From Macrostomum lignano (lineage: Eukaryota): 64,000 nt of DNA. A program made the translations under genes and the position numbers. Shown here piece by piece: positions 13,901-49,350 of this stretch. The notes beneath the pieces were generated by a model. The model worked only from the letters and a program-made list of their open reading frames with translations, was not told where the DNA came from and did not search any database. Every line of letters begins with the position of its first letter. Within the stretch, counting starts at the first letter, position 1. The stretch covers positions 1 through 64,000 of the forward strand of contig NIVC01000681.1 in NCBI GenBank assembly GCA_002269645.1. The letters are read 5' to 3'.

Positions 13901-16900
13901 AGAGACAGACAGACAGACAGACAGATGGACACTAAGACAGACAGACAGACAGACAGACAGACAGACACTAAGGCAGACAGACAGACAGACAGACAGACAG
14001 ACAGACAGACAGACAGACAGACAGACAGACAGACAGACAGACAGACAGACAGACAGACAGACAGACAGACAGACAGACAGACAGACAGGCAGGCAGGCAG
14101 GCAGACAGACAGACAGACAGACACTAAGGCAGACAGACAGACAGACAGACAGACAGACAGACAGACAGACAGACAGACAGACAGACAGACAGACAGACAG
14201 ACAGACAGACAGACAGACAGACAGACAGACAGACAGACAGACAGACAGACAGACAGACAGACAGACAGACAGACAGACAGACAGACAGACAGACAGACAG
14301 ACAGACAGACAGACAGACAGACAGACAGACAGACAGACACTCACCGCTTGCCCGGTTTATCCGAATCATCCGGCACCCTGAAGCTGTTCCCAACCAGGTT
14401 GTCCCGCTCGAAGTTGTCCTTCTTAGCAATAACATTGACGCCCTCTCTGGTTACGTAATCGTCCTTCTGCTTGCCGTTGCAGTTGCCGCAGAGGCCCACC
14501 ATCCTGCCCGCGTACTGCTTGCCCACCTCCACGTAGCCGGTGTAGCGGCCGTCGAAGGCGGCGGAGAAGCGACACTTCGTGGCCACGAACTGGACGTAGG
14601 GGCCGGAGTAGAACACCCGAAATCCCGGGCCAGTGTAGGGCAGAGAGACGATCTTTCCATCAACCTGTGTTTAAATACGAGTAGATAAATAAAGTTAAAA
14701 TACGTATTAAAACTATGCTACTTATATCTTAAGTACTTATAAGTAGAAAAAATTGCGCGTGAGTGTGTAACGTTACCAGCGAACACAAAAAATGGTGACA
14801 ATCTGACCATTTTTAAGAAACCTAATTTGCATAAAACTATGAGCGTATTATCACTGCTACAAGCCCGTTTCTACTCATCGTCTCCTCTCTCTCCTCCCGT
14901 CTCTCCTGTCTCTCCTGCCGTCTCTTCTGTCTCTCCTCCTGTCTTCCTGTCTCTCCTCCTGTCTCTCCTGCCGTCTCTCCTGTCTCTCCTCCTGTCTCTC
15001 CTGCCGTCTCTCCTGTCTCTCCTGCCGTCTCTCCTGTCTCTCCTCCTGTCTCTCCTGTCTCTCCTCCTGTCTCTCCTGCCGTCTCTCCTGTCTCTCCTGT
15101 CTCTCCTCCTGTCTCTCCTGCCGTCTCTCCTGTCTCTCCTCCTGTCTCTCCTGCCGTCTCTCCTGTCTCTCCTGCCGTCTCTCCTGTCTCTCCTCCTGTC
15201 TCTCCTGTCTCTCCTCCTGTCTCTCCTGCCGTCTCTCCTGTCTCTCCTGCCGTCTCTCCTGTCTCTCCTGTCTCTCCTCCTGTCTCTCCTGTCTCTCCTC
15301 CTGTCTCTCCTGCCATCTCCTGTCTCTCCTGTCTCTCCTCCTTTCTCTCCCGTCTCTCCTGTCCCTCCTCCTATCTCTCCTGTCTCTCCCTTCTCTCCTG
15401 TCTCTCCTGTTTCTCCTCCTTTCTCTCCCGTCTCTCCTGTCCCTCCTCCTATCTCTCCTGTCTCTCCCATCTCTCCGGTCTCTCCTTCCGTCTCTCCTAT
15501 CTCACCTCCTGTCTCTCCTGTCTCTCCTCCCATCTCTCCGGTCTCTCCTGTCTCTCCTGCCGTCTCTCCGGTCTCTCCTGTCTCTCCTCCTGTCTCTCCT
15601 GTCTCTCCGGTCTCTCCTGTCTCTCCTCCTGTCTCTCCTGTCTCTCCGGTCTCTCCTGTCTCTCCTCCTGTCTCCTCCTGTCTCTCCTGTCTCTCCTCTC
15701 TCTCCTGTCTCTCCTGTCTCTCCTGTCTCCTCCTGTCTCTCCTGTCTCTCCTGTCTCTCCTGTCTCTCCTGTCTCCTCCTGTCTCTCCTGTCTCTCCGGT
15801 CTCCCCTGTCTCTCCTCCTGTCTCCTCCTGTCTCTCCTGTCTCTCCTGTCTCTCCTGTCTCTCCTCTCTCTCCTGTCTCTCCTGTCTCTCCTCTCTCTCC
15901 TGTCTCTCCTGTCTCTCCTCTCTCTCCTGTCTCTCCTGTCTCTCCTCCCATCTCTCCTCCCGTCTCGTCTCCCGTCTCTCCTTACGTCTTTTCTCCCTTT
16001 CTGTATACGTTTTTTTTCTAGAGGCAGGGGCTGTGTCACTGGCGCATTTTAAGCGACATTGTCACACAACTGCCCATTCCGCCGACTCCCCTGAGCAGGC
16101 ACACAAGCGCACGGATACGTACGCAGTCGAACGCACAGGCACACACTCACACAGTAGTGTACAGTGGCCCTAACTTTATTTATCGTTAGGCAAGTACACT
16201 TCACTGCGCCTTGGGGGGTTGGCTCTCAAGGCCGTTAATTGCACGAGCAGAGCCAAGCCGAGATTCCAATCCACTTGGAATCGAGCCTGGGCCGCTGGCC
16301 CCTTACCTACAGGTGCTGTCAATGACAGACTCACCAATAGCCGTTTGTGCTGATGCAGGCGAAACACTCGTCCAAAGATTTTCACATCCAGCAGCCTCAC
16401 GTAGGTGTAGTTCTTGTTGTCGCCGCGATGCTCATTTTTCACCTGCACGTCGAAGGCACAGGGGTCGGCCGGGTTTCTCAGCTTCGTCAGGGTGTACTTG
16501 CACTCGCCCTGGAAGTGCAGCGGCACGCCGTCGTACATGAGGAAGTGCGGGTCGCCGAGTGCGTCGCAACGGCAGGCTGGAAGCATTGGAGAGGATTGGG
16601 GATGCTTCAAGCGATGGGGGGTCTTTACACGGATTCAATTAAAACCAACAAAATCGGCAACTGACTCTTTCTTCGGGCGCAGACTTCAGTGTCAACGTCG
16701 GTCATTTTTTTGCAATTCCCCATCCGATCTTTGACGTAATAGATGGTCACCACCTTCTGCTTGCCGGCAACGCAGGGTTTTTCAATGGTTTTCGGTTTAG
16801 GGCAGCCTGTTGAGATTGAGACACGTGAATGATCACTTTAAATAAATTGTTAAAGCTTCAGATCACAAGATTCGAAATAGATCGTCTTGAAAACTCACGG

Positions 16901-49350: not shown

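Follow-up and report, generated by a model that had tools for sequence, protein, structure and literature searches.

We describe a gene of the flatworm Macrostomum lignano, BOX15_Mlig022069g3, which lies on the minus strand of the 64,000 nt stretch of DNA analysed here (positions 1 to 64,000 of contig NIVC01000681.1, assembly GCA_002269645.1; hereafter the window). The gene encodes a protein of 2136 amino acids (aa), PAA78532.1, the bulk of which is a repeat of two small cysteine-rich modules, A and B, in strict alternation. On balance, we lean towards an explanation in which the gene belongs to a new flatworm repeat family, its array was built by exon duplication, and its product is a multimerizing, polycationic extracellular rod that binds polyanions. 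The sequence of the gene is already known, being deposited in GenBank under the name 'hypothetical protein'; as far as we could find, the repeat family, its fold, the homology of A and B and its phylum-wide distribution are undescribed.

The whole gene occupies positions 9883..49350 of the window and consists of 39 exons plus one optional exon. The encoded protein begins with a signal-peptide-like N-terminus, followed where the optional exon is included by an Ala/Pro/Lys-rich linker, continues with 37 modules (1623 aa) and a VWD-C8-TIL assembly, and ends in two consecutive ShK domains. Exons were called de novo, by scanning the minus-strand translations for the cysteine motif and adding splice sites, after which the GenBank protein was mapped. 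PAA78532.1 (P0002 in our protein set) could be placed on the window as 39 exact blocks with 100% identity, the first opening with the ATG at 49350 and the last closing with the TAA at 9885-9883, and the GenBank model agrees exactly with the de novo exon calls. The repeat part takes up 30.5 kb and 32 exons (47213..16666, minus strand); it runs from the opening base of the first A exon, 47213, to the closing base of the last, 16666. All 32 repeat exons have canonical ag/gt borders and lengths divisible by three, with the acceptor one codon position before the first cysteine of each segment and the GT donor in phase 1, and when joined they give a stop-free reading frame of 1623 aa. A word-indexed search also found a UniProt fragment from M. 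lignano that is 100% identical, and whose cluster includes PAA78532.1.

The array contains 19 A and 18 B modules, or 18.5 copies of a unit of approximately 85 aa, and all 37 modules follow the order ABAB...A. Module A conforms to xC-x8-C-x17-19-C, followed by 12 residues to the next cysteine, and module B to C-x10-C-x17-CxC-x10-C; the flatworm A/B unit as a whole reads xC-x8-C-x17-20-C-x12-C-x10-C-x17-CxC-x10-C, with eight cysteines. These cysteines are invariant in the 17 aligned pairs of the gene, although identity to pair 1 is only 17-33%. Outgoing strands of the unit are rich in T, V, Y and L, and on returning strands V alternates with K or R. A preliminary description of this DNA, made from the sequence, had placed a two-module cysteine repeat at 16666-47213, and these end points are exact exon ends, on the minus strand. 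Its count of 18 A+B pairs plus a final A was borne out once PAA78532.1 had been mapped, because one degenerate fused exon (34614-34312) had escaped the motif scan and was revealed by the mapping. The strong divergence that it reported alongside conserved cysteine spacing is equally evident in the pairs compared here. Its spacing needed adjustment in detail: the x8 of module A holds, the following gap is x17-19, and the tail of B is x10 rather than x12. Eight cysteines per pair, as described, is correct for the 17 aligned pairs; in the pair in exon 34614-34312 the cysteines are shifted. The alternating T/V/Y and K/R strand patterns that it noted hold approximately.

To place the repeat in a wider context, a profile of the pair was built from nine A+B pairs and used for an exhaustive HMMER search of 1.84 billion representative proteins. 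At E<=1e-3 the search returned 58 proteins; 22 of them also passed E<=1e-10, and 8 passed E<=1e-30, with up to 36 matched stretches per protein. Several of the top matches are alternative or mis-spliced models of this same gene, and all other named matches in the repeat region belong to Platyhelminthes. They comprise cestodes (Echinococcus granulosus, Taenia, Hydatigera, Anoplocephala, Sparganum and Dibothriocephalus), trematodes (Fasciola, Clonorchis, Paragonimus, Echinostoma, Dicrocoelium and Calicophoron), the monogenean Cichlidogyrus, and paralogues in M. lignano itself. The repeat accounts for 60-100% of the family proteins, among them giants of up to 5,600 aa, and the eight cysteine columns are 93-100% conserved in 210 full-length units of the other family proteins. 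The E. granulosus protein EUB62272.1, which is 5275 aa long with about 45 pairs by local hmmsearch, goes under the name 'Collagen alpha-3(VI) chain'. Two vertebrate collagen VI proteins also matched, over no more than 4-5% of the query and most probably in its VWA domain.

The domains that accompany the repeat are all extracellular: VWA, VWD-C8-TIL, ShK and, judged by eye only, a PAN/apple-like stretch. In one relative, P0020, the repeat is combined both with an N-terminal VWD-C8-TIL assembly and with ShK. Three proteins from different species (P0012, P0020 and P0028) end in a common cassette of ShK, a cysteine-rich stretch that resembles PAN/apple by eye, and a further ShK; in P0020, the member that was scanned, only one ShK of the cassette scored, weakly and below the Pfam cut-off.

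These searches show the unit to be a domain family without a Pfam entry or a relative of solved structure, in agreement with the preliminary description, which had proposed a new domain family. The lophotrochozoan source to which that description pointed is likewise right, the animal being a flatworm. No Pfam match at E<=10 was found on the whole repeat, none was found in the repeat regions of five homologous giants, and 70 family units scanned singly gave no recurrent Pfam family and no match to TSP_1, Cys_knot, VWC or PTN_MK. The family profile likewise matched no Protein Data Bank (PDB) sequence at E<=10. Precomputed Pfam annotation for 13 orthologues lists only VWA and VWA_2. Some repeat-only sequences (P0001, P0005, P0007, P0012, P0015, P0019 and P0051) carry automatic UniProt names such as 'VWFA domain-containing' and 'CTCK domain-containing'. 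No Pfam VWA or Cys_knot match was obtained in those that were scanned (the region common to P0001, P0005 and P0007, and P0012 and P0015), and it seems that the source profiles behind these names match the repeat falsely.

The structure of the unit was predicted with AlphaFold2 for one pair, using a family alignment of 70 sequences, and for two consecutive pairs. The model of one pair (AB) is all-beta, with a mean predicted local distance difference test score (pLDDT) of 96.7 and a predicted template modelling score (pTM) of 0.67, and has three strands in A (residues 6-12, 15-26 and 29-40) and two in B (59-70 and 73-84). The two-pair model (ABAB) reached pLDDT 96.4 and pTM 0.64, with high confidence across the junction between B and the following A, and in it B also has a short N-terminal strand. 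With high confidence, therefore, the predicted A and B halves have a common layout, in which a short strand leads into a long hairpin with strands of approximately 12 residues; this fits the disulfide-rich beta-hairpin modules proposed in the preliminary description. Foldseek searches of the PDB with AB and ABAB gave no match at E<=0.001, and searches of a viral library gave no match at all. The best PDB matches (E 0.52 and 0.39) were both to long strands of green fluorescent protein-like barrels, with template modelling (TM) scores of 0.34 and 0.18-0.20. The root-mean-square deviation to compact folds was very large, rising from ~20 Å for one pair to ~30 Å for two pairs, which points indirectly to an extended shape.

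Profile comparison shows A and B to be copies of a single ~42 aa module that have diverged. Alignment of the A half with the B half of the family alignment by hhalign gave a probability of 93.8% and an E value of 1.8e-7 over 38 columns, and MAFFT spontaneously placed isolated A modules on the B half. The alternation of two modules described earlier stands, but they are not two unrelated building blocks. In the hhalign alignment A1 pairs with B1, A2 with B2 and A3 with B4, from which it follows that B equals A plus two extra cysteines, B3 (the first of the CxC) and B5 (the last).

By the strand order of the models, the chain would run into each module at the tip of the hairpin and out of it at the open end, so that modules would be joined head to tail in a thin rod. 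In this arrangement the cysteines A2, B1, B3 and B4 would meet at the A to B junction, and B2, B5, A1' and A3' at the junction between B and the next A. Some family units lack two cysteines, and in these A1 and A3 were lost jointly in three cases and B1 and B4 in three others, which would leave A2 to bond with B3 and B2 with B5. In the degenerate A11+B11 unit of the M. lignano gene, B3 is missing and the A tail has a new cysteine. From strand topology and joint cysteine loss, we infer the disulfides 1-3, 2-6, 4-7 and 5-8, that is A1-A3, A2-B3, B1-B4 and B2-B5. Under this map A, with three cysteines, and B, with five, are both odd-numbered and only A+B would be fully bonded, which would explain the strict alternation.

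The intron positions are informative about the origin of the array. Between the signal-peptide exon and the VWD exon there are 33 introns, all in phase 1, as the preliminary description had stated for every intron, and the 31 introns between repeat exons each lie one residue before the first cysteine of a module. Across the whole gene 36 of 38 introns are in phase 1, the exceptions being a phase 0 intron inside VWD and a phase 2 intron between the second VWD exon and the C8 exon. When the E. granulosus homologue was mapped to its locus (L001), 71 introns were found, 57 of them in phase 1, and 53 of these 57 fall exactly one residue before the first cysteine of a module (25 at B to A boundaries, after the module-final cysteine, and 28 at A to B boundaries). 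Judged from this comparison of gene structures, the exon-per-module phase-1 design is shown to predate the split between Macrostomorpha and the parasitic Neodermata. Because one module corresponds to one exon with phase 1 at both ends, and because intron positions are shared with Echinococcus, the array must have grown by exon duplication before that split, in keeping with the ancient expansion envisaged in the preliminary description. The low identity between pairs likewise argues for old duplications. The five fused exons are best read as later intron losses.

The repeat region is strongly basic. It contains 231 K, 229 R, 49 D and 71 E (28% K+R, net charge +340, isoelectric point 10.3), together with 153 cysteines and only two NxS/T sites, and the charge is concentrated on the returning strands of the hairpins. 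Three related proteins (P0018, P0055 and P0061) are more extreme, with 32-37% K+R and less than 1% D+E. These features lead us to propose that the repeat would serve as a disulfide-braced spacer rod, the returning strands of which would bear a dense array of lysine and arginine. By analogy with von Willebrand factor (VWF) and the gel-forming mucins, both of which multimerize through VWD-C8-TIL, the C-terminal assembly would link the molecules into disulfide-bonded multimers. What is secreted would then be a polycationic fibre, multivalent and able to cross-link glycans of polyanionic character in mucus, glue, a coat or a matrix. The physical principle would be that of Mlig-ap1, the cohesive protein of the temporary glue of M. 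lignano (Wunderer et al. 2019, PMC6410801), but implemented with folded modules instead of low-complexity stretches of lysine and arginine (KR).

Several other explanations must be weighed against this one. The alternation itself could be artefactual, produced either by the choice of exons, a possibility that the preliminary description had raised against its own claim, or by the assembly of a genome rich in repeats; some substance is given to this by introns packed with tandem repeats that are open in several frames and by several visibly mis-spliced database models of this gene. Nevertheless, the GenBank model matches the de novo calls exactly, every exon has ag/gt borders and preserves the frame, and three near-identical gene copies (g1-g3) show the identical module order. 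Alternation is likewise found in other genomes and in two relatives that are uninterrupted open reading frames (ORFs) on intronless contigs (L002, 6.7 kb, from a JGI sample; L003, 12.9 kb, from the Logan assembly of run SRR8820788); we took both contigs to be transcript-derived, in which case the alternation would exist in mRNA. In 16 family proteins, 333 of 381 adjacent transitions alternate when scored with crude half-unit profiles. Half-unit hidden Markov models sort A from B imperfectly, even in this gene, because the two are homologous, and we therefore relied on the cysteine pattern and on the pair profile. The pair profile scores E=1e-177 on the independently predicted protein, and this score and the recurrence of the unit in 58 proteins exclude chance. 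The gene model, the gene copies and the relatives lead us to reject an artefactual origin of the alternation, which we consider next to impossible. The modules might instead be remote relatives of the thrombospondin type-1 repeat (TSR) or of the TSR-like domains of midkine and pleiotrophin, and the preliminary description had called them 'loosely TSP1-like'. Each module is indeed predicted as three antiparallel strands of elongated shape, the protein is very basic, as are midkine and pleiotrophin, and the spacing of A plus the next cysteine, C-x8-C-x19-C-x12-C, may resemble that of the pleiotrophin C-domain. Yet WxxW and CSVTCG are absent from all 37 modules, and tryptophan makes up 0.3% of the repeat residues. 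TSP_1, PTN_MK_N and PTN_MK_C gave no match at E<=10 on the whole repeat or in 70 family members, the PDB sequence search was negative, and no TSR or midkine structure appears among the 50 matches listed for each Foldseek search. The predicted strands are also regular 12-residue beta strands rather than a rippled Trp-Arg ladder. We regard kinship with these domains as improbable, and the TSP1-like label is not supported.

A still less probable alternative is that the A+B unit is a divergent, tandem member of the CTCK or growth-factor cystine-knot superfamily. It owes its appeal to the automatic UniProt name of a 180 aa fragment of this protein (P0007, 'CTCK domain-containing protein') and to a possible resemblance of the C-x17-CxC of module B to the last finger of CTCK domains. 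Set against this, none of the 70 family members matches Pfam Cys_knot or any cystine-knot family at E<=10, the consensus has no CxGxC motif, and neither Foldseek search has a cystine-knot structure among its 50 listed matches, none of which reaches E<=0.001. The models place the CxC (residues 72 and 74) where the B hairpin turns, between strands 59-70 and 73-84, and not at a finger base, and CTCK is normally single and C-terminal, in contrast to the at least 18 tandem copies found here. Relatedness to TSP1 or to CTCK is therefore not supported. More serious is the proposal that the product is a structural protein of the matrix or basement membrane, comparable to the 5,400 aa orthologue group with VWA in parasitic flatworms, neutral in purpose and with incidental charge, or else a defensive or antimicrobial polycation with toxin-like ShK ends. 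The family is conserved in Neodermata, where it is not cationic and is joined to VWA as in collagen VI-type matrix proteins, and Neodermata are without duo-gland adhesive organs, all of which speaks for a matrix role; ShK domains also occur in toxins and channel blockers, which speaks for defence. However, a net charge of +340 over 1623 aa, carried by one strand per hairpin, is unlikely to be neutral, the members with 32-37% K+R and less than 1% D+E suggest selection for charge in a subfamily, and VWD-C8-TIL is typical of multimerizing gels and glues, including Mlig-ap1 and the sea-star protein Sfp1. We judge a matrix or defensive role unlikely, without dismissing it.

A number of observations weigh against the explanation that we favour, the multimerizing polycationic rod. 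The homologues in parasitic flatworms are near neutral, with 15-17% K+R and 10-12% D+E, and since they are not polycationic, the domain cannot have had charge-based binding as its ancestral role; such binding may be confined to a basic subfamily. Multimerization via VWD-C8-TIL is assumed from other proteins. The predicted rod geometry and disulfide map draw on secondary structure, on sequence logic and on only three plus three cases of joint cysteine loss. Foldseek is weak on small, elongated, disulfide-rich domains, so that the lack of a known structural relative is not final. Literature searches with the locus tag, with orthologue accessions and for ShK or vWD gland genes of M. lignano found no paper on the gene or the family. 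A bolder extension of the rod proposal is that the unit is a new extracellular fold that originated in Platyhelminthes and is confined to them, in which alternation is enforced by disulfide arithmetic, three and five cysteines becoming fully bonded only in a pair and through a bond between modules, that giant proteins conserved in every major group of parasitic flatworms have it as their rigid backbone, and that a hyper-cationic Macrostomum branch has become a reversible electrostatic cross-linker of glue or mucus. We offer this extension as a speculation that is possible but doubtful.

The complete exon map, given in the order of the protein and entirely on the minus strand, is as follows. 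Exon 1 (49224..49350) contains the start codon and the signal-peptide-like hydrophobic stretch, and ends in phase 1. The optional exon (48311..48481) is 171 nt long with phase 1 at both ends, encodes the Ala/Pro/Lys-rich linker, and is present in the models P0001 and P0005 but not in P0002. The repeat then opens with exon A1 (47055..47213), which has a 13 aa N-terminal extension, exon B1 (46705..46848) and the fused exon A2+B2 (44848..45099). These are followed by A3 (44644..44766), B3 (43436..43567), A4 (43236..43358), B4 (43025..43156), A5 (42561..42689), B5 (42346..42477), A6 (41788..41910), B6 (41579..41704) and A7 (41039..41161), after which comes the fused exon B7+A8 (39971..40225). The central part of the array consists of B8 (39116..39247), A9 (37830..37955), B9 (37398..37547), which has a 6 aa loop insertion, A10 (35507..35638) and B10 (35281..35412), and then the degenerate fused exon A11+B11 (34312..34614), with shifted cysteines, an extra cysteine in the A tail and no first cysteine of the CxC. 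Single modules resume with A12 (33181..33303), B12 (32969..33097), A13 (32061..32186), B13 (31845..31976), A14 (28732..28857) and B14 (27957..28088), up to the fused exon A15+B15 (23580..23849). The array closes with A16 (20157..20282), the fused exon B16+A17 (19064..19318), B17 (18055..18186), A18 (17844..17966), B18 (16899..17027) and the final unpaired A19 (16666..16806), which includes a short linker. Three exons are thus fused as A+B (45099-44848, 34614-34312 and 23849-23580) and two as B+A (40225-39971 and 19318-19064). In the preliminary description they were numbered 5, 21 and 28, and 15 and 30, which is accurate if the optional exon is counted as exon 2.

Downstream of the array, VWD, C8 and TIL follow one another in this order on consecutive exons between 16576 and 11984, each scoring above its Pfam cut-off. 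VWD (E=1.1e-26, 94.5 bits, residues 1670-1822) is divided between a first exon that contains the motif GDPHF (16335..16576) and a second exon identified by Pfam and mapping (14345..14664). The C8 exon (13431..13726; E=7.1e-10, 39.5 bits) and the TIL exon (11984..12175; E=6.9e-8, 33 bits) score only when segments are scanned alone, both being missed by the Pfam scan of the full-length protein. Pfam ShK matches two stretches (E=3e-8, 34.5 bits against a cut-off of 20.9), the first on its own exon (10780..10929), and the second on the last exon together with the C-terminal tail and the stop codon (9883..10094).

The database models of the gene are of uneven quality. The preliminary description had suggested that symmetric exons would allow in-frame skipping to tune length; among the gene models, the exon content of P0001 and P0005 differs from that of P0002 only at the non-repeat exon 48481-48311; as the models come from different annotations, this difference is no proof of isoforms, and the exon could be a real cassette exon or the difference a mere matter of annotation. 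Model P0001 has two further exons upstream of the signal-peptide exon (MLMRPVSTFGLAGPK..., 50404-50806, minus strand), and because the longer 5' end buries the signal peptide it looks like a mis-annotation. Five other models (P0008, P0009, P0013, P0016 and P0025) are visibly mis-spliced. The gene copies g3, g2 and g1 (P0002, P0003 and P0004) lie on three contigs of the assembly Mlig_3_7 and are near-identical, a few substitutions apart, which is consistent with the known duplication of the M. lignano genome.

It should be noted that the introns have an unusual composition. Nearly all introns longer than ~200 nt (between 10201 and 48107) are filled almost from splice site to splice site by a private tandem array with a period of 4-94 bp and a length of 200-2000 bp, the unit being different in each intron (for example 45104-46588, 20397-22401, 35780-37330 and 12241-13367). 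The short introns are uniformly 77-94 nt long and without a repeat. Many of the arrays are open in several frames, and so mislead some gene predictors as well as lists of ORFs. In the 4.1 kb intron between exons 27957 and 23849, the plus strand has a 150 aa ORF (25359-25811) with a signal-peptide-like start, several cysteines and no Pfam match. The mis-spliced models P0013 and P0025 read the opposite strand of this region, and the ORF could be either a nested gene or a chance occurrence. Upstream of the gene, two similar short ORFs (54242-54499 and 61517-61831, minus strand), 7 kb apart, share the pattern …TSSDEED…LRVR[DE]L.W.S…[KR]Q.[LK]…RLD…, and an acidic ORF of 278 aa (58724-59560, minus strand) lies between them. 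None of the three has a Pfam match, and they may be exons of tandemly duplicated neighbouring genes.

The family represents a domain that has no entry in curated libraries and whose very confidently predicted structure has no detectable structural neighbour. In tapeworms and flukes (Echinococcus, Taenia, Fasciola, Clonorchis and Paragonimus), some of the largest proteins consist mainly of this unit; at present they are called 'hypothetical' or wrongly named 'collagen VI' or 'VWFA'. With a family profile, every flatworm genome would be better annotated, and an extracellular protein restricted to the phylum would be flagged. For the study of protein evolution, the array is a clear example of growth by one exon per module, with two diverged copies of a module now dependent on each other. 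For bioadhesion research, a folded, disulfide-braced polycation would be a counterpart to the disordered KR regions of Mlig-ap1.

Mlig-ap1 is the closest comparison from the same animal. It has 5,407 aa, with KR low-complexity regions A-C, vWD-C8-TIL, a C-type lectin domain and 17 EGF modules; heparin-type polyanions block attachment, and it was proposed to bind polyanions electrostatically (PMC6410801). Like Mlig-ap1, PAA78532.1 is a secreted M. lignano protein that is very rich in lysine and arginine, rich in cysteine and equipped with vWD-C8-TIL; unlike Mlig-ap1, it carries its charge on folded disulfide modules, has ShK in its tail and is encoded on another scaffold. We considered whether it could be identical to Mlig-ap1 or Mlig-ap2 and rejected this, as it contains neither the Mlig-ap1 motifs KSRKVN and SRKPRRKNRKSRKP nor either of two antibody peptides of Mlig-ap2, Pfam finds no lectin or EGF domains in it, and its length and scaffold differ from those of Mlig-ap1.

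True homologues of the repeat are the parasitic-flatworm giants (EUB62272.1 and the proteins of Taenia, Hydatigera, Anoplocephala, Sparganum, Fasciola, Clonorchis, Paragonimus and Calicophoron) and Mlig008915 of M. lignano. They share with this gene the eight-cysteine A+B unit, its alternation and the phase-1 introns at module boundaries, but they have about 45 pairs, carry VWA instead of VWD-C8-TIL and are roughly charge-neutral. The D-assembly proteins, namely VWF, the gel-forming mucins and the sea-star protein Sfp1, resemble it in being secreted, cysteine-rich and provided with VWD, C8 and TIL, which in PAA78532.1 are C-terminal. Unlike VWF and the mucins, PAA78532.1 has a single D assembly, no mucin-type Ser/Thr-rich domain, only four NxS/T sites, and the new repeat as its bulk.

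Among small extracellular modules, TSR and the midkine/pleiotrophin domains are similarly elongated, three-stranded and stapled by disulfides. They often reside on phase-1 exons, and midkine and pleiotrophin are basic and bind heparin. The flatworm repeat differs from them in the number and pattern of its cysteines and in its long regular strands, and has neither WxxW/CSVTCG nor a profile match or significant fold match to them. CTCK is comparable as a cysteine-rich, all-beta unit of about 85 aa with a CxC, but the flatworm units have no Pfam match or CxGxC, place the CxC at a predicted hairpin turn and are arranged in tandem. Finally, the array follows the rule of the phase 1-1 shuffled modules (EGF, LDLa, TSR, Ig and FN3), in which an extracellular module coincides with a symmetric phase-1 exon and expands in tandem. 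It departs from those mosaic modules in that its repeat unit spans two exons, which encode two obligately alternating, diverged modules, and in that it belongs, as far as seen, to a single phylum.

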